From the NCBI GenBank assembly GCA_000320545.1, contig ADNK01000697.1, forward strand, positions 1-64,000: a stretch of DNA of 64,000 bases, given 5' to 3'. Shown in pieces: positions 2,287 to 57,310 of this stretch. This DNA comes from Bigelowiella natans CCMP2755 (taxonomy: Eukaryota; Protista; Cercozoa). A program made the position numbers and the translations under genes. The first letter of the stretch is position 1. Each line of letters starts with the position of its first letter. The notes below the pieces were generated by a model. The model was not told where the DNA came from and searched no databases. It was given only the letters and a program-made list of their open reading frames with translations.

Positions 2287-3435
2287 ATGACACTGAGCAT
2301 AGTGAACAACAACAGTTCTTACAGTCTTTCACTCAAACTTTCAATCTATTAGTTATCATTACTTCTCGCGTTACCGTTGGCCGCACAGCCATATGGAATC
2401 TCTAGAGTTGCTCGTCCCTGTGCATTCAAAGCCGTCATTGCCCCAGCCTTTAGACGCAAACGAATCAGCACAAGTAATCAGGCTACTATTTAATCCGATT
2501 TAGCCTCGAAGCAGCAATTGGCTTCTGACTACGTTTATCTCTAGCTTGTTTCTTTTCTTTGCTTTTCCAGATATTCAAGTTCCTTTACGAGGATGATGTT
2601 TGATCATATTCGCTCAGATGCGCAAGCTCCTAAGGATCCTGTTTGGTCACCTACCACTGCTCCTGGGGAAATTGAAGGGTTGTACAACCTTCTCAAGAGC
2701 AAAAAGATGATTAGAACTTACGACGAGGTAGAAATTCCAATTACAGAAGCGTGGGGAAATGACAGAGCTGTTGTAGCATTTCTTCGACACTATGGGTAAT
2801 ATTCTCTCTAAAATTCATCATTTATAATAGCCCGACTCGATAATACAGCATTCACTTGTGATTCCGAAAAGTGCAGAAGATCTGAAATTATTCGGTCCTA
2901 CAACAAAGACTTCTTCTTCTTCCTTCTACACAATACCAACTCAGGTGACTATTTTGCTGGGAGCTAGGGAAAACCCTTGCAGACTACATTCCAGACTTTA
3001 AGAAGGCGGTATTACGTTGGACGCAGCATCAGATTTCTTCGATTTAAGCATTTCTTCTTAATTTTTTAGGGTGTGAATTTGGTCGCAATCGGTATTGGCG
3101 ACGCTGACAAGGCCAGAGAATTTTGTAGGGAGACAGGCTTCCCGGAAGAATATCTGTAATATGTTTACAAAATTCTATAGTCGATTGAAATTATCATTAT
3201 CATGAGTAAAGGGGTTTTAACAAGATAAACAACGTGTGCGTATGTGTGTATATGTTTCGATTTGATTGCCTCTTTGAACCAGATACTCGGATGATGGAGG
3301 AACCTATCGCGATGCTGGGTTCCGTGGAGGCATAAAGGACACCTTCTTCAGATCAGCAACATTGTCCTCATTGACAACAAGATTAAGCGGTTAACTAATA
3401 ATTATACATTCTCTCTCTCTCGCTCGCTCGCTCTT

Positions 3436-3512
<77 letters not shown>

Positions 3513-4167: not shown

Positions 4168-4559
4168 TGTGAACTCGTTCTTTTTGGTTTACGCTGTCTA
4201 CAAAGCGTTTCAATGGGCAATTTGCTTTAAATCGCTTTTGTGACTAGATTGGATAATGTAAAACATGAAGCGAATTCATGAAAGGTCTTTCATACTGATT
4301 TTGAAAAAGTTTATTTGTCTACTTGTTGAGTGATGCAACAGTGCAGGTAGTGTCCTCACAATCATCCAACTTGTGGACCGCATATGCAATATCAGCGACC
4401 AGTGATTTCGTGGAGAATTATACCATTACATTGTTGATCTAGTTATCCACACGAAGATAGCAAGTTTATTGCCCCATATCCGAATCATGCAGATCCAGGT
4501 GTCTTAGGACTTAGTAACATATCTTTTGTTTGCCGAAATCTTGTTATAATATTCGCATC

Positions 4560-5720
4560 GGCGCCGATCAGCGCGGATCAGTAATAATAGCATATGACAA
4601 TATTAAATAGACACACTTATTTCGTAGTATGAGTACGGCGCCACCGCGATGCGATGCTGCATGGACGCATGAAGTAGCATGTGCTGTGCATGGCAGGTGC
4701 CACGATCGACCTTCTAGTAATCGAAGATTCTGGATGTCTGCCTTGTGACAGCGTTCGTATACGCATCTAAGCGTACATACAGGTTACTAGCTGTCTATTA
4801 GCAGCTGTGGTGTGTCGTAACGATGAGGCTGCTCATCTAGCTGCCACATGCTGCATGAGATGGAATGGACGATCCCATTGATAGAAGGCTATGAAACACG
4901 CTCCAATAAGCTAAGGCTAGAAAGCCCAATAAGCTAGCGATTGCTAGATTGCGAGCAAGCCTACCTAGCACTACGTGCGCATTGCAGGTAGTATAGTAGC
5001 TACTAGGCTAGCTAGCTAGCATCCGCGCATACAATGCTTGTGACAGACGAACAATCGAACAATGCATGCCACTACGCACGAGAACTACGATGCGCATGCA
5101 TGATGGAGGCTCATATAGCAGGGCTTTTCTTCTTTCCTTTGACTTGCACATCACCTCGCTCGATCAAGTTATAGGGCATGTGTGCCATGCTAGCATGGTC
5201 ATGGCACCATAGCATGGCACCACATGTATCATCCATACATGCAAAGAGCAGCTACCCTTCCATCAGTCAAATTGACTGCGTGCCACAGCGCACATATGCG
5301 GTGAACAAGCTCTGCACAACGCCATACGCCTGCAGCGTGTACGTACGTAGCTGCTATGTTGTACGTTATTGTTCAGCGTGGTCTGCTAGTGCAGCATCGC
5401 ATGGTTATCAGTTATCAGCTAAATCTTCCTCATTATATTGACGATGATGCTACATATAATGCTAGGTCTATATCTAGCCAGCATTGTGAATTCTTTTGAT
5501 CGGTGCATGCAGCATGTCTAGATGTGCATAATGCTTGTACACGAGCGATTTGCGTGCATATGTCAGCATATGCCCGGATGCCCGGCCAACAACTCGACAA
5601 AATGATTTATTATACCATCATGTCAGCACAGCGTAGCACATCAGCGTTGCAGACCTAGTATCTGCACATTCGCTTAATGAATGAAATTGATAGACACTTC
5701 ATCTATATGGATCTAGTACT
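4560..5720. repeat. Palindrome-rich intergenic island (GCATGC, TGCA, CTAG, TAGCTA words)
   Basis: Dense self-complementary words (e.g. gctagctagctagc ~5010, catgctagcatg ~5187), no credible ORF, lies between convergent 3' ends. Confidence 0.55.
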
Positions 5721-5838
5721 GACAATATTTCGTTACCTTTAATGAAGTTTTTGAAACTGTGTAGTAATAGTGAAGTGCATTATAGGAAACTGTGTTACTT
5801 CTACGAGCTATGCAGTGATGAATGACCCTACGGTTATT

Positions 5839-6619
5839 CTATTCCTTGCAAGGGCAGCACATGCTATCGCCGTTCTTCTTATTGTGGCGAATGGTGTTGA
5901 GAACTTCCAAGAAGGATGGGAGCGGCATCTGGGAGCCATCTCCAGAAGGAGTTCCAGCTGCAACGACAGCTGCAGCTGCGTTACCAGCAGCGGAACACTC
6001 ACAGCATTTTGGGGTGGTTGCACATTCAGGCTTTTCACACTGGAGCTCACATTTTGGCTTAGGGCAAGTAGTTGGCTTCCTGCACTTCCAATCGCACTGA
6101 GTCTCTTCACACACAGGATTGCACTTTGGCTCTGGAGCTACGCACTTAGTGTGGCATTTAGCAGGAGAACACACAGTCTCACACTTAGGGCAGCCCTCTT
6201 CCTCGCACATATCCTTAGGGCACCTTACAGAACAGATGGGCCTCTCACAGTGGATTGTGCACTTGGCACAAGGAGTCTGATGACAATCAAATAAGTAACA
6301 AATCAGCAGTCTCTTCAAGATAAGGGGAGAGGGAGGGTATGCGAGAAGCTAAGAATGTGTTTTTGACCTCCTCACAGCTGATTTCACATTTTGGTCTTTC
6401 GCAAACAGGATGACAAACAGCAGGACAGGATGGATCATCACATTGCCATTTGCATTCCGGGTGGCATTGCGCCTAACAATAAAAGAAAATAACGTCAATT
6501 AGACAATCAATTACAATTCTACGTCACTGCAGTACCTCTGCGGTAGAATTCATTGTTGTTGCAAACGCAACAGAGCCAAAGAGAATTAGAGCAAGAGATT
6601 GAATAGGGGTAGGAGCCAT
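5839..6619 (-). CDS. Secreted cysteine-rich repeat protein, copy A (208 aa, 3 exons)
   Basis: Exons 6619-6536, 6472-6368 and 6276-5839 join in frame through phase-0 GT-AG introns of 63 and 91 nt. Signal peptide MAPTPIQSLALILFGSVAFA, then QCHPECKWQCDDPSCPAVCHPVCERPKC...; 33 Cys by my count. Confidence 0.9.
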
Positions 6620-6951
6620 TGTGAGTGTTTAAGAAGACGATTAGGATAGTCTAGAATTTGATTCTGGGCTGAGGACTTTCAAATTTAAATATCCGAATTA
6701 ATAAAATTGAATTGATACACGTAATTAATTCGCTTTAATGAATTCAGTCCGTAATCGAAGATATTAAAACGTTTAAAATTAATTTAGGTTAAAATTCATG
6801 TCGCAAGTGAGGAAGGGGATCGTTTTTTACAAAGATTCAAATTAAAAAAAAGAATTAAAACTGCGCTAGTGTGCAGATGGATTTCAAATTTAAAAATTAA
6901 AAAGTGATAAGTTGTCAAAACCAGAACAACCACATCTCCCCACCCCAAACA
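6620..6951. promoter_or_regulatory. Putative bidirectional promoter between the inverted Cys-rich genes
   Basis: 332-bp AT-rich unique spacer between ATGs at 6619 (-) and 6952 (+). The role is inferred from position only. Confidence 0.55.
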
Positions 6952-7731
6952 ATGGCTCCTACCCCTATTCAATCTCTTGCTCTAATTCTCTTTGGCTCTG
7001 TTGCGTTTGCAACAACAATGAATTGGAGGTACGTGTTTTCTACACCAAATATGATTCATTGCAAAACCTAATCTAATTGATTTGCCAATATACGTAGGCG
7101 CAATGCCACCCGGAATGCAAATGGCAATGTGATGATCCATCCTGTCCTGCTGTTTGTCATCCTGTTTGCGAAAGACCAAAATGTGAAATCAGCTGTGAGG
7201 AGGTCAAAAACACATTCTTAGCTTCTCGCATACCCTCCCTCTCCCCTTATCTTGAAGAGACTGCTGATTTGTTACTTATTTGATTGTCATCAGACTCCTT
7301 GTGCCAAGTGCACAATCCACTGTGAGAGGCCCATCTGTTCTGTAAGGTGCCCTAAGGATATGTGCGAGGAAGAGGGCTGCCCTAAGTGTGAGACTGTGTG
7401 TTCTCCTGCTAAATGCCACACTAAGTGCGTAGCTCCAGAGCCAAAGTGCAATCCTGTGTGTGAAGAGACTCAGTGCGATTGGAAGTGCAGGAAGCCAACT
7501 ACTTGCCCTAAGCCAAAATGTGAGCTCCAGTGTGAAAAGCCTGAATGTGCAACCACCCCAAAATGCTGTGAGTGTTCCGCTGCTGGTAACGCAGCTGCAG
7601 CTGTCGTTGCAGCTGGAACTCCTTCTGGAGATGGCTCCCAGATGCCGCTCCCATCCTTCTTGGAAGTTCTCAACACCATTCGCCACAATAAGAAGAACGG
7701 TGATAGCATGTGCTGCCCTTGCAAGGAATAG
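6952..7731 (+). CDS. Secreted cysteine-rich repeat protein, copy B (inverted duplicate of copy A)
   Basis: Exons 6952-7032 (or 7028), 7098-7202, 7294-7731. Exon 2, intron 2 and exon 3 equal the reverse complement of copy A except one synonymous change (GGC/GGT). The frame is kept only if the GT at 7033 is the donor. Confidence 0.8.
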
Positions 7732-7859
7732 ACAAATTGGGCTACCCTGTGTTAGTGCAGCCATTCGCTTTTAATATTAGTTGAGAATGTGATTACAGTC
7801 AATCTACTTTCATCTTTCCTGTACAGCGTATAAGGTGCGCACGAGACTGTGGATCTTCT

Positions 7860-8780
7860 CTAACTTTGGTTGCATGAATACTGTGTAGCATGCACTGATG
7901 AGCAATGCGCTGTACGTTATCGCCTACAATAACGCGTTTATTATGCTTCGCGATATTTAATACAAGAATGCTTACAATCTTGAATAATGAGCCACTGAAC
8001 ATGCAGCTGGGCGAATTAATTGTCAGTGCGTCACCGTCTGCATGCAAGCGCCGTGAAGGCAATGACACGCTACGATCGACGTACATATGATGGCCATCAT
8101 TGACGACGGTCGCATCGCACACATGCTAGCATGCATGCTAGCATGTGCATTGCTGCCGCCAGCCGTGATCACTTATTGCTATATGTGCAGCATGTGAAGC
8201 TAGCCTCACAGAAGAGGTGTGTGCACGCAGCTCAAGCTTGATCAGATCGAACAGCTGCCAATAAGATGTAGTACAAGTAGTGCATCACCAAATGACCATG
8301 CAAGGAACGTCCGTGCATACTAGCCGTACACATGGCACACGTGTATACGCACATAGCTAGCTAGCCTAGAAGCCCAGAAGATGACACATGGCGATGGACG
8401 CATATGCACAGCTAGTAGATGATTGTTGCTGCAGCGCGCTGCGCGGCGCCGCCATGCATGCATTGCCGCGAACGCTGACGACAATTTTAATCGAGATGCA
8501 TGCTATGTAGCTAATGCTATGCGTGCCATGCTAGCATGATCACACACGTCTAGACGTGCGTAGCTATATAGAGGAGACAAATACGACTATGAGGTGCCAA
8601 ACTGCGCGCTCCAAATGCCACCTGCTACCCATGCATATGTATTGGATGCCAGAAGCTTTGATTTCCTGCAATTCATGCTAATAGCAGGGAGGATGGGTAT
8701 CGCTTTGAAAAATATGCAGCAGCGAACGACAAATGACTAATTTATGCTAATGCACAGCACTCGCACTCGTGTGCGGCCAA
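7860..8780. repeat. Palindrome-rich intergenic island containing a 28-bp perfect palindrome (8120-8147)
   Basis: cacatgctagcatgcatgctagcatgtg is its own reverse complement; many GCATGC/CTAG/GCGC words; lies between convergent 3' ends. Confidence 0.6.
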
Positions 8781-9071: not shown

Positions 9072-9109
<38 letters not shown>

Positions 9110-9833
9110 CAAACAATACTTGCGACAACGACAACAACAACAACATGGTTGCTCCTACGAATAATAAGGTGGTTAGCTTTGTGTTTCTACTACTGTGAAA
9201 AGAATATTTGAGGCGCTCGTTGAGGATGGATATATCCCCGCCAGGTCTGACCACCATGAAAAACCACCACCATTATCCAAATAATCTCAGTATAATATCT
9301 AGAATAAGGCAATATAATAATAAACAACAACAGCAACGCATGATGGATTACCTGGAACATGATTTCGTTTAGAAGAGAGAAAAGCGACTCAAGATCTATA
9401 TTCCATCCAGACTGCCCAAATCCAGCATTGATACACGCTCTTCGTGGTAGTATTAGTAATAGTAGTAGTAGTAGGAGGAGGAGGAGGAGCAGGTGAAAAG
9501 ATGAAGACAAGTGGCAGTGATGATTCATTGAATTGTGTCCTCTATTATCTCATGCCAGTAGTGGTTATGAGCAAAAAGCAGTATTTATCACCATAAGATC
9601 ATCTACTATCGTATACAACAATAATGGTGTGTTTATCAAACTACAGACGAAAAGGGGTGGATGGATGGATGCATTCGTTGGTCGTTCATATCATCATATT
9701 ACTACTACTACTACTACTCCAGTTCTACCCACTATCACAGCTAGTATTATCATCATTATTTATCACAACTACCTGTAGTCTATCCCATCAGACGAAATCT
9801 TCTCATCCAATACACACACACACACATGCAAAG

Positions 9834-9875
<42 letters not shown>

Positions 9876-10260
9876 CAAAGCACATACTCAGAGCACATTG
9901 ACATCTCTGAGCTATATAGCTAAAGTTGTGGTTATAACAGCAGCTACAGAAGCAGCTCTGTAGTACATACCCGGTGTGCACTTTCTCTCAAATCATCGAG
10001 CCGGAGCCAAAGACTGATCATAATAATAACGATGATATGATGAATGCCAGGCAAAAGAATGACTGGTGTGTTATCGATCGGCATGTTATCTTTATGTTTA
10101 ACAGAGTCATAGCAGCAATAACACATAGCAGCAACAATACCTCCTCATTCTTTTAAAGTTTGCAATACTTCCGAACATGTCCAGATACCTTTTGGTTTCA
10201 TCATCATCATCATCATCATCATTATCATCATCAGTCTTCTCAGCTATGCTACAATTGACG

Positions 10261-10318
<58 letters not shown>

Positions 10319-10359
10319 TCGATTTTGTTGGTGTTGAACAGCACGAGGAGGAGGAGGAG

Positions 10360-10398
<39 letters not shown>

Positions 10399-11648: not shown

Positions 11649-13300
11649 TCAAGCAAACAGTTACAACAGCAGAGCAGCAGTAGTAGAATATTCGGAGATA
11701 ATTTGTATTAAGAAATATGCATTCGAGCTTCATGATATAGGTATGGTTGTAATGGTTATAAAAAATAGTGAGAAGGAGAAGCTAGCAAGGAGATAAGTAG
11801 TAAGTACGCGGGGTCGATTGAGAAGATACGAAGTCAATTGTTCCTGTGAGAGCCTGGTTGTGGATTATTATTATCAACAAATAATAAATAATATATGTGT
11901 GTATGCTGCTTGGAGTTGATCAGGAGGATGATGACAGTAGTATGTTAATGGAGAGCATGTAGCAGAGGGGTGTCACAAAGCATCATAGCTATTACTGTGT
12001 GAGGGGGTCATAATGATCCTCATTCTTCTTCCTTGCCTTTATCGATTCAGTGATATTTTTCTTGTAGTTTCTCGTTGCTGTGCTCAAAATGGGGCTGGAT
12101 TTTAGCAGAGAGGACGATTGTTCCGCGGCATCATGATAATCCAGTTCTCTATCATCATCATCATCATCATCATTATCATCATCATCGCCTTCTCCTCGCT
12201 GTTTAGCTTTAGCTATGACTTCCGCTTTGGGTGATGATGATGCCGATGACCCTTTTCTCATCTTTGTAGTTTTCTCCATTAAAGTGGGTGATGATTTCAC
12301 AGCAGAAGCAGCAACAGTAGCAGAAGCAGTAGGATGATAATCATGACGAGCGGGCTTTGATGTGTTTTCGCTTTTCTTGTTGTTGTCCTCCTCCTCATGC
12401 ATTGATTGCAGATAGGGATCCTGCTTCGGAGTGCTTGTAGAGTGTGAAGTCATGTCATCATCTTTTTCACTGTTTTGAGCATATTGCAGATAGTGATCCT
12501 GCTTCGGAGTGCTTGTAGAGTGTGAAGTCATGTCATCATCTTTTTCACTGTTTTGAGCATTAACATTTTGACCAGTGGCACGTGATGGTGGGCTCTTCGA
12601 ATAGTGGATTCTATCACATCGTGCAGAGTCTCTGGAGGATATTTCTCTGAGAAAGGCTGGCGACACGTCTCTTCGTCTTGGACTGGATGATGATGATGAT
12701 TCGGGAGAATAATCAAGTTTGATCTGCTTCTTCTCGATAGCTACGACGGCAACAGTAAGGAGCACCAAAAACATTGGCAACAACTTAAGAGCAACAGCAA
12801 ATGGCTGCTGCGTAGTCTTGGACCACGCAGCTCTTCCTTCAGCTGCCATTTGTATTCGAATCAAAGCTAGCAAAAAGTAGTAGCTTTAGCCTTTTTGGAG
12901 CACACCACCATAGGCGAGTGAGTAGTTTTAATTTGTACAGTGATGGTTGATTGATGTGTTGTCCTCGTTCCTCCTCCCCCTCCTCCTTCTTCCGAATAAT
13001 GAATGAGTGTATTATTATTGTCTCTTGAGTATTTGCAGGGATGTGAGGCCAACAATTCACAAAAAACCGCAAAACAACAATCTTTACAACAATAGTATAA
13101 TATAAAGCATTTCTATAGGTATTATCGGCTTAAATATTTGTCTTGAATTATCCAGCACACTACTACTACTACTACTACTACTTCTTATATTTCAAGAACC
13201 TCCTCAAAACCCAACATAACTAAATAACACAACACAACGACTTCCCGTACTCACCATCGTCATCTGCCAGATGAATCTTACTCCACGAACCGAAGCACAT
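8950..13300 (-). CDS. Multi-exon hypothetical protein with N-terminal hydrophobic segment and long low-complexity region
   Basis: Large exon 11992-12873 with LLPMFLVLLTVAVVAI then an S/D/K-rich linker. Probable first exon MCFGSWSKIHLADDD (13300-) splices in frame. Downstream GT/AG-bounded pieces include LSQEQLTSYLLNRPR, KRYLDMFGSIANFK, LWLRLDDLRESAHR and ACINAGFGQSGWNIDLESLFSLLNEIMFQ. Family not recognised; 3' end approximate. Confidence 0.5.
11025..11074. repeat. Perfect 25-bp tandem duplication, probably intronic
   Basis: aaatagtggtaaaagctgccaactt x2. Confidence 0.9.
12405..12560. repeat. 78-bp coding tandem duplication (26-aa unit)
   Basis: Units start at 12405 and 12483 with one internal mismatch; encodes AQNSEKDDDMTSHSTSTPKQD(H/P)YLQ twice on the - strand. 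Confidence 0.9.
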
Positions 13301-35279: not shown

Positions 35280-36780
35280 TGCGCCATGCGATATCTTGTC
35301 CACACTGAGGCAATTTTCGCGGTTACATGTTCGGCCCCTCGAGACGACTTGGTGCATGCTGGCATGCTCAGCTTGATCGATCTGAGCTGCAACTTCGCTG
35401 TGCATTCCTGCAGCAACTCCAATTCGAGTAGATGCTTGCGTCGCCGCCATGTTGCTGATAGTTGCATTCCTCAACAGTGACCAGAATGCCAATTTCAAAA
35501 TCCCACTGGTTTCACCAGTTGGGCCTCACTGGCTCACTGCCAGACTGAACCAGTGAAGCTAGCTGGCTTGTTCGAGGCACTGCGTTTCGTGCACTGCAAA
35601 TGTCGTGAAACACTTTGAAAGTGCAGTTCATCATCATTGTTTCATTGTTTCAAATGGAAACGATTCTTTCTTTCAAAACTTTGGAAATGCAGTTCTTCAT
35701 CACGTTTGTTTGTTGTTCGGAAACGTGGTCGATCACCGTGTTTCTTTCCTTCTTTCGTTCTCTGGTTCTTTCAAGTTCAGAAATGCCTGCTCTGATGACC
35801 CCATTCCAGCATTGCGCGATGGGTCACCTACCTAGCTACCTGTGCGATGGTGATGATGGCTAGATGGCTTGGATGGAGATGATGATGGACACGCAACGTC
35901 ACGCGATCACAATGAGCTAGTGAGGTTGAACGTCTGGACATGCACACGCGTGAACAGCACCGTCGTTTGTTTGTGGTGACGTGAGATGAGCTAGATGAGG
36001 GCCAGACGGGGCAGCAAAAAGGGAACGGCTAGACGGCGATTGCAAAATTGGAAGGGAAGGAAAAAAAAGAAAGGCAGACGGAGCAGACGCTCAATGATCC
36101 CCACGACCTAGCTAGCTAGCCATGCCAGCACGTTCATTGTTGTTTGTTGGGTTGTTGGCCGTCGACACCCAGCTGCTAAAGCTAGCTAGCTACCAGTCTG
36201 TGACGTGCTAGCGTCTAGAGCGTGTCTGAATGCAGTTGCACACATCGTGTTGTTGCAGCGTTCTAGCGTTGTTGCCTGCACCAATGACCTAGCAACCCAT
36301 GCACGTGTGCGCAAATGTCTGGCGGACGTTGGGACGCAAGTGAGATCATTGCTAGACCTCTAGCTAGCTAGGTCTGCACCCACACACACCTAGACACGTG
36401 CACACCACTGCTAGACTGGACCACACGTGCATCCATTGGATGCTGGATGCATGTGTGTCCAGCTAGCCAGGTGCACGTCTAGACGTACATCGATCCTCCA
36501 GATCCTCATCTCAACAAATTGGCTGTCATCATCATTGCTAGATTGTCCAACTCTGGAAATTGTCGGTCTGGACTGCAGAGGTCTAGGGGTGTTCATTGTT
36601 CATGCCAGTGTGTTCGGGAGAAATGAGCGCAACCGCGACGTTTCAAAATAAGGGCTACACACACTAGGGCATGCAAGCATGAGAGCTAGAGAGGTGGAAG
36701 GTCAGAACCAGAGAAGGTGAGTGTGAAAACTCGGTTACTGCCTGATCATGCAGCACGTACTACACACTGCACTGCCTGCG
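35280..36780. repeat. Palindrome-rich intergenic island downstream of the RGS-FHA gene
   Basis: Dense gctagctagc, ctagac, tgca, gcatgc words; no credible ORF. Confidence 0.5.
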
Positions 36781-36892
36781 CAAGCTCAAAACATGAAACT
36801 ACAAACAATTATTGCGTGTACTATGGCAAGATCAACTGGTAGAAGATAGTCATAGGTTGCTTAAGGAATAGATTTAGTCTTGTGCAGCGCTA

Positions 36893-53729: not shown

Positions 53730-56431
53730 GAGCGTCCTATACGATCGATGACTTTTTGAAAGATATCAATCGACGCTCTCTTCGGAAGATACTTTGTCGG
53801 GCAAGACGTTAAGATTAATATCTCACAATTAATGAAATATCATCTCGGATTCTACTCAAGGAGCGTTTAACTGTTTTTGGGGGGGGGGTTTACGTGTGAC
53901 TTGAGGTGGGGTTTGAGGTGACAGGGTATTTTAGCAGCGACATGAAAAACATGTTGTCGCGGAGAATAATTGGATCGATTCATGCATATTAAAGCACTTT
54001 TTACATTGTTCTCAGATGTTTCTCGATTATTTTTATGTCCAAATTCTCTTCGAATGCTTAGGAGGCAGATGGAAAAAAAATTATACTGAATATATCTGCC
54101 AAATGATTTCATGTTTGAAAGAACATAAACAATACTTTATACAATCCACTTCCAGCCACCACCCCTTGCTAACCGGAACCGGTTTCCTGTCCCCACTTAG
54201 GGAGGACAACCAATATTCGGGCAGGAAATCCTTGATTATGAATGTTATTATTATAAATTTCATTATAGTATTGGGGATCTATGTGGGACTAATCTTCGCC
54301 CCATCAACTCCTCTGCTACAAGGGTACATATAATGCTGGTACAATCTCTCAAAATGCTCGCTTTGTATGATAGCGTTTTCGGTGCTACAGGAGCACAATA
54401 TACATTCTCGGTATTTCTTCTATTCTCTCCGCTGCCCAAATCCTACATTTTTCGGTGAGATACACCAAAATCGCATGAAATGAGAGAAATATTCCAGAAC
54501 GTAATTGAACACTTTCTATAGCGGTTGATTCCGGGGAAGAACGCTCTTCGACTGGATGCGTGCGCTGTTATCAGAGCATTTGCCGCCATCGTCTTGGTAA
54601 AATTATTTACGTTGATGGAACAAACAGGTTGCAACAATTTCGCTTAATTATGCAGATCCTCTCGTTGGACGTTCCTGCGGCTCGCGTAAACTATCACAAG
54701 TGAGCAAGGAGGAGGGGGGTGAGGAGGAAAGGAGGACATGAACTATCGTTTGGGTGTCGTTGAATGGAATTTGTATCTGATTTTGGAAGCAGTAAGAGCC
54801 TGAATTTATCATTGTTGAACTGCTGATTCCTACCGATCGTTTAGGGCAATTCTAGCTGTGAAGACATTGAAGGAGAGCCTTCCAAATCGAACGGTAATAT
54901 GATGATCATGATGCTTCTAATAGAGATACTAGTACTCTTTTTGGTGTCATGTTTTCTGCGTACGAAGAATGATGTATTTGCAACCACCCATCTTTCTTCT
55001 GTTATCATGCGTAGTAGTAGTATCAAAAAAACGAATGGCATTTTAGCCAGCCGCACTACTTGCCTTCTGTTTTCATGTGTAGTATCGAAGAATACGATGC
55101 ATCTGTTGTATGTACGTAACTGATTTCATTCCGAATTGTTCGTCGTGTAGGCGGATGGTTTGTTCTCTCAGTTGGATCAAAATATGGACAAGTAATAGTG
55201 AAATCATTATCGACTTAAATATCACCACGTATTGCATCGATCGATGTACGAATTCTCTCTTCAGGTCACTAGACGAGGTCGAGATGACTAAGATGGTCTC
55301 CAATAAGTCTTTGCTGGCGGTTGACAAGGACGGCAACGGGCAGGTGGAAGAGAACAACAGTAGAAGGAGTGGTTATAGTGGTAGTTGTTGTATAATAGGA
55401 ACAGTAAGTGGGAGTAGAGGTTTTGGATGTCAGAACTACAGCATCTTTTACCCCGTAAATACACGAAATTGCTACTACAAATATAATAGTGAAGAACATA
55501 TTACATAGATGATATTCATTTGATACGGTAAATTGAATTAGATTGATCTCCAAGAGTTTCATAATTGGGCTAAATTGAATTAGATTGATATCCAAGAGTT
55601 TCATAATTGGGCTAGCCAGCTCGAATGCTCAAGCAAGAAAGGGGTAGTACAATTTGTCTATGTTTCATCACCAGGTTCACCCTTGTCCTCCTTATCATAT
55701 TAGGATCAGGAAAAGGGTACATTTTGCTCGAGGTTTTGCGATAATGTGTTCTCAGCTTCTATAGCTAGACAGCATGCGCTCAACCACATTCGAGACTTAT
55801 ATCCAATCGGGTATTAAACTTCTTTTCACAATGGTGAATGTATAAACTATCCCCACCTCTCCAGCTAATTTGTTGCATTGTACACCATGTGCTGCATGCA
55901 GGAGTGTCTTAAGCTCTTTATTTGACTTCGAACGAGGCATGGATCAGGTTATTAGCGTTTATCACACAAGCAACGGCATTTCATAACAATCAATTCTATC
56001 ATGAAATGCTTAGGAGGAAAAGATTAAAAATCTTTTCGCTAAGAAATCATGCAAGGTATTATTATGCGGCCAAATGGCTTTCTCTAAACCAAGAGCGCTC
56101 TCTATTGTATATTTCCTCCTCACTGCTAACACATGGTGGTTGTTCTTTCACTAATACTTCTCCTCTCCTGTATGATGATGCCAGAGAATCTTGCAGTCTG
56201 TCGATCGGACTAATTTCTTTGCAGATTTATTATGCTTCTCATGGTAAATATTCAAGAATTATGCTAACATCACCTGGAATATTGCGTTGCTTTATTTATA
56301 TAAGAAAGGGCTATTGAAGTGTTTTTTTTTTAAATTCTCGTAGGGCTGTGTTTGCTGTATCTGCGGTGGCTTATTGTCTCAAGATGCGGGCCCATAAAGA
56401 GCGCGGATTAAATGATAGCAAGCAGGAGTAA
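53730..56431 (+). CDS. Multi-exon EF-hand pair protein with C-terminal hydrophobic segment; 5' part unresolved
   Basis: FSQLDQNMD(R)|SLDEVEM...AVDKDGNGQ|IDIQEF (two EF-hand loops); ASIARQHALNHIRDLYPIG|SVLSSLFDFERGMDQ; last exon AVFAVSAVAYCLKMRAHKERGLNDSKQE-stop at 56431. Confidence 0.55.
55529..55613 (+). repeat. 42-bp tandem duplication spanning a 3' splice site
   Basis: taaattgaattagattgat(c/a)tccaagagtttcataattgggc at 55529 and 55571. Confidence 0.9.
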
Positions 56432-56499
56432 TTTCATTACGTTGCATTTATTCACTCCAACAGTGTGCAATAATAGACATAATAGTGTAGAATCGGAGA

Positions 56500-57310
56500 A
56501 CACTGTGTAGCATGGTGTCATCGTAGCTAGCTCACTAGCTCTCGTCTTAGCACAGACATCTAAAATTGCATTGCCAGGTATTCAAAGCACACATGATGCA
56601 TGTGTAAATGCGCAGCAGCTGCTGCGTACTTTTAATCGATCGTGCATGCGATGCATGCATCGAGCATCGAACCCGCCGTCCAGTGCAGTACTTCGTGCAA
56701 GTGTAGCGGTACAAACATGTAGGTGTATAGGTGCAGAGATAGTTTGCACAGCTCTTGCAAGAGCTACTACATGCATTAGGATGACAATTGAAAATGTTGC
56801 AATTGATGTGCAAAATCTGTCTCGTGGGCCATGCAGCATGCTAGCATGAAACACATAGCAATGTGGCCATTGTGTTACTCTCCATGGCCTGTCGTCTTAT
56901 TAATAAGTGCATTCACACCGCGTAGTGTGGTTGATAAATGTAGTCGTCTAGCAGTGCATATAGTGTCCCTATCATGTATATACATGGCATGCACGGGATG
57001 CTAACGTGGCACATCGATCGTAGCGCACATCGCCAGCTGCTCTACTAGAATATCATTTCAATGCGTTTATTTAGCACGCCCTTGTGTGATGAATGATTGA
57101 TGCATTGTCAGTACTAGCTAGCTAGAGCAGTATGTAGCGTGTAGGGTACATGAATATATCACATCATAAAGAATAGTAATCGATGCGTAGATGCATCGCA
57201 CGCACGTAACTTAGAAGCAAGAATCTGCTGTAAGTCAGATGCTACCAAAGCAATGCCAGGACAAACAACACAGAGTGGAGAATCGAGCTTCATGATGCAG
57301 CGTGTTTGCT
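56500..57310. repeat. Palindrome-rich intergenic island sharing a 21-mer with the 29.7 kb island
   Basis: agctcttgcaagagct palindrome (~56749), gcatgctagcatg (~56837), shared cattaggatgacaattgaaaa (56774-56794); lies between convergent 3' ends. Confidence 0.6.

Follow-up and report, generated by a model that had tools for sequence, protein, structure and literature searches.

The arms of the ampliconic palindromes of the human Y chromosome are held at >99.9% identity by intrachromosomal gene conversion around a short unique spacer. These arms run from 9 kb to >1 Mb and include intergenic DNA. For duplicated genes of yeast, cDNA-mediated copy correction was reportedly proposed by Pyne, Skiena and Futcher in 2005. 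The duplicated Amy genes of Drosophila undergo concerted evolution that is confined to their coding regions, while their flanks evolve independently, as far as the account in PMC3924832 goes (citing Hickey 1991, and Shibata and Yamazaki 1995).

In the nuclear genome of the alga Bigelowiella natans, we analysed two small genes, each with three exons and two short introns, that lie head to head at positions 5839-7731 of the window, by which we mean the whole 64,000-nt stretch of DNA. As in the Y palindromes, inverted arms are near-identical around a short unique spacer, but here the identity is limited to the coding exons and one intron, and homology has been lost from the flanks. As in the copy correction of yeast, the identity follows the coding sequence and leaves an intron diverged; in B. 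natans, however, the identity covers all of intron 2 but not the UTRs, and this speaks against a processed RNA as template. The closest likeness is to Amy, as that source describes it (PMC3924832), in that ectopic conversion would homogenise the duplicates, within-species identity reaches silent sites and the flanks are independent. Unlike Amy, the B. natans genes measure just 0.78 kb and are separated by only 332 nt, one intron has been homogenised while the other has escaped, one copy carries a possibly disabling indel, and the host is a rhizarian alga. A literature search on rhizarian algae found no case of a coding-limited conversion pair. We propose, with a probability of roughly 0.8, that the pair is an old inverted duplicate in which ectopic gene conversion between the arms has recently, and probably more than once, overwritten the coding parts.

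The features on which this reading rests are as follows; a slash in a donor site marks the end of the exon.

5839..6619, minus strand: left gene copy, ATG at 6619, TAG at 5839-5841, from exon translations
6536-6619, minus strand: left copy, exon 1
6473-6535, minus strand: left copy, intron 1 (63 nt)
6368-6472, minus strand: left copy, exon 2
6277-6367, minus strand: left copy, intron 2 (91 nt)
5839-6276, minus strand: left copy, exon 3
6620..6951, no strand: spacer, A+T-rich (31% G+C), of divergent-promoter type, without inverted symmetry
6952..7731, plus strand: right gene copy, ATG at 6952, TAG at 7729-7731
6952-7028, plus strand: right copy, exon 1 with the conserved donor GAG/GTACGT, out of frame
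6952-7032, plus strand: right copy, exon 1 with the copy-specific donor TAC/GTGTTT, in frame
up to 7097, plus strand: right copy, intron 1
7098-7202, plus strand: right copy, exon 2
7203-7293, plus strand: right copy, intron 2
7294-7731, plus strand: right copy, exon 3
6949-7024 and 6547-6622, inverted: identity block 1, 76 nt, 100%; 3 nt of leader and the first 73 nt of exon 1
7095-7732 and 5838-6475, inverted: identity block 2, 638 nt in base-by-base alignment
7025..7032, plus strand: lesion in the exon-1 tail of the right copy, a single G opposite the left copy's CTACCGCA, net -7 nt
7033..7094 (partner 6476-6531), plus strand: diverged interior of intron 1, ~62 versus ~56 nt
G000:C833:12302-13368 (L005:4302-5368), minus strand: C833 paralogue, unlinked, single-copy, three exons

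The reading frame of the left copy is intact, and its exons sum to 208 codons in translation. The same three-exon layout is found in the C833 paralogue, and the predicted peptides of exons 2 and 3 correspond residue for residue to full-length homologues. Protein searches, in which the exons served as separate queries, matched exon 3 of the right copy to the JGI model Bigna1 130968 (P0001) at 100% identity over the entire query. This model of the right copy was the only public one returned for the pair; none was found for the left copy or for the C833 paralogue.

The head-to-head arrangement with an ATG-to-ATG distance of 332 nt, the exon-1 tract and the longer second tract with one synonymous mismatch had all been proposed in the original prediction, and each was recovered by a repeat search and by base-by-base alignment. 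The repeat finder returned inverted arms at 5838-6502 and 7068-7732 (665 nt, 98%) together with the 76-nt arms of block 1, at 100%. Block 2 opens 3 nt before the end of intron 1, spans both later exons with intron 2 between them, and runs 1 nt beyond the stop codon. It contains a single mismatch, a T at 7701 opposite a C in the left copy (partner 5869), which exchanges the glycine codons GGT and GGC. Exons 2 and 3 thus hold 1 synonymous difference in 180 codons, and intron 2 is identical at 91 of 91 positions. The predicted limits also agree to within 1 nt: identity begins 3 nt upstream of each ATG and ends 1 nt beyond each TAG. All four tract ends come to within 4 nt of the edge of an exon or of the CDS; at each, over a few nucleotides, the divergence between the copies rises from ~0.15% to that expected by chance. 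No further long repeat of this kind was returned when the 64-kb window was compared with itself by BLAST.

We compared the sequences around the tracts with shuffled controls. The halves of the spacer, aligned in inverted orientation, gave a score of 10 (shuffles 11.0 ± 2.0 and 9.96 ± 1.55), and the 300-nt 3' flanks also scored 10 (10.7 ± 1.3 in shuffles), showing no homology in either case. No inverted homology was found between the 1000-nt 3' flanks, and inverted k-mer matches counted by diagonal gave one short low-complexity match and nothing else. The lack of flank similarity that had been read from the sequence by eye is therefore borne out by shuffle tests on the spacer halves and the 3' flanks.

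The spacer does contain a 28-nt repeat in direct, not inverted, orientation, with a TTTCAAATTTAAA core, at 6665-6692 and 6870-6897 (score 16 versus 10.2 ± 1.6, reached in 10 of 1000 shuffles). Its copies lie at near-equal distances of ~45-80 nt from each ATG. Relative to the left gene, the orientation is reversed. The region upstream of the C833 paralogue carries GATTTGAATTTAAAT, which is similar to the core in the pair, and the repeat may be a TATA-like core promoter element. The promoters of both copies retain weak residual similarity to the C833 promoter, at levels reached in 4 of 500 and 18 of 500 shuffles.

Palindrome-rich islands of GCATG/CATGC and GCTAG/CTAGC words, ~0.6-1 kb in size, occur in the window at 4501-5600, 8001-8700, 35801-36800 and 56401-57300, where 500 nt hold 13-25 such words, compared with a median of 1 in the window. 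Two of these islands lie ~100-200 nt past the stop codons of the gene pair. We considered them as homologous flanks and rejected this idea, as they share composition without alignable homology, and their mutual similarity is no higher than that among unrelated islands elsewhere in the window. The window also holds a 78-nt tandem duplicate with 98.7% identity (12405-12560, by self-comparison), and long intergenic dinucleotide microsatellites surround the pair at 3410-3510, 9075-9105, 9810-9880 and 10265-10395 (runs of CT/AC/AG, AT, AC and CT/GT).

The two introns have fared differently. Intron 1 and the tail of exon 1 had been described as unalignable; the interior of intron 1 is indeed diverged, whereas the exon-1 tail aligns as a simple indel. 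Within the intron 1 interior, the branch-point-like motif TCTAATTGA is retained together with marginal similarity near TAATTGA, and the residual local match scores 12 versus 7.5 ± 1.4 in shuffles (reached in 4 of 300). A third paralogue as donor of intron 1 was considered and rejected, as the right copy's intron 1 is unique, with no second match in the B. natans genome. This search covered one assembly of one strain (91.4 Mb, 3,736 contigs). A functional RNA as the cause of the intron 2 identity was likewise rejected. The best Rfam match of intron 2 had an E-value not below 0.23, its folding z-score was -0.43, and intron 2 of the pair showed no similarity to intron 2 of C833. Because intron 2 has no Rfam match, no unusual fold and no similarity to its counterpart in C833, its identity between the copies appears to be passive.

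The lesion in the right copy is an 8-to-1-nt replacement in the exon-1 tail, after which the copies again share GAGGTAC with the donor site. The resulting 7-nt deletion removes an N-S-T sequon from the right copy, whereas the left copy, C833, every Amorphochlora and Partenskyella homologue and an environmental transcript (L017) retain N-x-T at this point. When the right copy is spliced at the conserved donor GAG/GTACGT, the frame of exon 2 is lost and exon 3 runs into a stop after 16 codons. The public ab initio model of the right copy, Bigna1 130968 (aug1.13_g5676), uses this out-of-frame exon-1 donor and sidesteps the stop with a shifted intron-2 donor; because it also moves that donor, the conserved CHPECKWQC... 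segment is missing from the model and is replaced by unrelated residues. The frame is preserved solely by a copy-specific GT located 4 nt downstream (TAC/GTGTTT). The use of this donor is possible because other donors in the family are degenerate as well (GTACTG, GTTAGT, GTCAAA and GTAGCG), and we put the odds that the right copy is in frame through it at about even. The right copy is thus either a 5'-damaged gene with a body refreshed by conversion, or a gene rescued by the donor 4 nt downstream; its body is identical to that of the intact left copy whichever donor is used. The deletion would have occurred after exon 1 was last homogenised.

The C833 paralogue provides a measure of the family's age. 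Exon 2 of C833 and exon 2 of the pair encode the same peptide. The C833 introns are much longer (254 and 192 nt) and unalignable with those of the pair, and at synonymous sites the proportion of differences between C833 and the pair is 0.82-1.13, beyond saturation. The gene family is therefore old. Third-position G+C is 0.34-0.51 in the pair versus 0.55-0.69 in C833, and because the pair lies below the unconverted paralogue there is no trace of GC-biased conversion. More distant B. natans family members are found on C2999 and C2995.

We compared the family across chlorarachniophytes at the protein level, treating the leaders (~25 residues) separately from the mature domain; the percentages are identities, for paralogues of one species and then between species.

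Amorphochlora amoebiformis, three annotated genes: leader 48-56%, mature domain 98.3-99.4%
Partenskyella glossopodia, transcripts with different leaders: leader 52-59%, mature domain 99.4-100%
Between species: leader up to 70-71% for one leader type, mature domain 84-91.5%

In particular, the Amorphochlora 23800 leader shares 70-71% identity with Partenskyella leaders, more than with its own paralogues. In a maximum-likelihood tree built from the exon-3 region, the Amorphochlora paralogues fell together (support 84/82), and the Partenskyella sequences are mutually identical across that region. On these alignments, leaders appear to track orthology and bodies to track species, a classic signature of concerted evolution, and this suggests that in Amorphochlora and Partenskyella, too, homogenisation reaches its 5' limit near the exon-1/exon-2 junction. 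Unlike the diverged leaders of those genera, exon 1 is identical within the B. natans pair. Because the locus tags of two Amorphochlora genes, AAMO2058_000030400 and AAMO2058_000030500 (P0117 and P0003), are consecutive on one contig, a neighbouring pair is present in this second genus. Copies that are nearer to their orthologues than to their neighbours, the pattern that the original prediction named as contrary to its reading, were not found in this protein-level comparison with leaders of ~25 residues.

Three results support an old duplication with gene conversion, rather than a fresh duplication, as had been predicted. The synonymous and intron 2 divergence of the pair is ~0 beside flanks, a spacer and an intron 1 at chance level; the unlinked C833 paralogue is saturated at synonymous sites; and the mosaic of identical mature domains and diverged leaders recurs in two other chlorarachniophyte genera. 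The homogenisation has reached silent sites (synonymous positions and intron 2), not the protein sequence alone, and the discordance between the converted tracts and adjacent sequence is sharp, with marginal residual similarity in intron 1; both are marks by which gene conversion is recognised.

Such a conversion would begin with a break or stalled fork in one arm that is repaired with the nearby inverted arm as template. Heteroduplex would be limited to stretches that are still similar, so that a tract stops where homology has already been lost, that is, in the promoter and 5' leader, in the 3' flank and in the interior of intron 1. The ends of the CDS, held similar by constraint on the protein, would stay inside the tracts. 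The 91-nt intron 2, located between two well-conserved exons, would be carried along passively, whereas intron 1 adjoins a short, weakly constrained signal-peptide exon and would escape homogenisation. The weakest step is the inferred origin of the 76-nt exon 1 block, which may be a separate short tract or part of a long heteroduplex in which an intron-1 bubble was restored. Two observations count against this mechanism: the tract ends, within 4 nt of exon or CDS boundaries, are sharper than simple erosion of homology predicts, and 76 nt, the length of the perfect exon 1 block between heterologous stretches, is little for a conversion tract that arose independently.

Several other histories could produce near-identical inverted arms. 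A recent inverted duplication of the segment from ATG to stop, for example by replication template switching, followed by replacement of intron 1 in one copy, would explain why the arms are virtually identical and why exon 1 is identical too in B. natans, against the diverged leaders of Amorphochlora and Partenskyella. However, both breakpoints would have to lie no more than 1-3 nt from the start and stop codons, the new copy would lack a promoter of its own, and a further event would have to rewrite ~60 nt of intron 1 but spare the donor, the branch-point-like motif and the acceptor. The weak promoter similarity to C833 fits flanks that were duplicated together with the genes and diverged later, and the same mosaic is present in two other genera. 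A recent segmental duplication is recognised by uniformly low divergence that includes the flanks, whereas here identity ends at the CDS and intron 1 is diverged. We consider this history unlikely. The close fit of all four tract ends to the exons could hint that B. natans has a systematic repair process, possibly transcription-coupled or transcript-guided, that copy-corrects neighbouring, divergently transcribed paralogues over exactly their transcribed or coding parts. In our judgement this is quite improbable; if true, it would mean a genome-wide mechanism, not a one-off conversion. Among the candidates scored in a Pfam search of the genome for glutamine synthetase, no adjacent pair appeared.

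The placement of all four identity boundaries within 4 nt of exon or CDS limits could also point to RNA- or cDNA-templated conversion from a partly spliced transcript, from which intron 1 had been removed and in which intron 2 was retained; the weak donor of intron 2 (GTCAAA) might often leave it unspliced. Yet transcripts carry UTRs, and identity stops at -3 from the ATG and +1 from the stop; with TATA-like motifs lying 45-80 nt upstream, the leader should be longer than that. Conversion from a template without intron 1 would also tend to remove this intron from the recipient. There is no poly(A) trace or target-site duplication, and the same boundaries are explained by DNA conversion limited by homology. 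Nor does either copy resemble a retrocopy, as each copy has its two introns, the flanks that correspond to UTRs are unrelated and there is no A-run after the stop. The suggestion of an RNA-related template in the original prediction is therefore not supported, with intron 2 inside the identity and the UTRs outside it, and we regard such a template as very unlikely. We give still less credence to an artefact of assembly or cloning in the form of a collapsed, chimeric or fold-back inverted repeat. Short inverted repeats with near-perfect arms belong to a known class of artefact, and the protein search gave only one public model, that of the right copy. However, unique flanks, different first introns, an indel and a point difference are all found in one contig that is at least 64 kb long, a Sanger read is longer than either arm, and the independent Amorphochlora assembly also has neighbouring, near-identical family members.

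The protein encoded by the pair belongs to a family with no assigned domain in the databases that we searched. The mature protein has ~38 cysteines with a spacing of C-x3-C-x3-C-x4 and a conserved PSFLEV...CCxC tail (CCPC in the pair), and the hydrophobic N-terminus looks like a signal peptide. A word search found 115 relatives at E ≤ 0.001 (including P0003, P0004 and P0006 to P0115), with 28 invariant alignment columns. In a metagenome scan, the relatives were mostly on contigs of ~1 kb, with the match in one continuous stretch; because it aligns uninterrupted, we take these contigs for protist transcripts. Pfam gave no family for exons 2 and 3 and none with E < 0.07 among 76 homologues, a PDB sequence search found no relative, and the ESM Atlas returned unnamed clusters only. 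AlphaFold2, run on a 76-sequence alignment headed by Amorphochlora P0117, produced a model of ten short strands followed by two helices (mean pLDDT 81.8, pTM 0.35). Fold searches with Foldseek gave E > 0.9, and VIA gave Z ≤ 4.0, confined to the C-terminal helices. Our best guess is that the protein is a secreted or surface disulphide-ladder protein.

The proposed gene conversion of this pair is a tidy example of a familiar mechanism and does not overturn current understanding. It provides a small, clean case of coding-limited concerted evolution in a rhizarian alga, in which a homogenised intron 2 and an escaped intron 1 mark where conversion tracts stop. The analysis also corrects the public model Bigna1 130968, in which exon 2 is read out of frame, and flags the right copy as a gene that is possibly damaged at its 5' end and yet kept fresh by conversion. 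Finally, the pair points to a widespread, well-expressed and unannotated protist family of putative secreted cysteine-ladder proteins.
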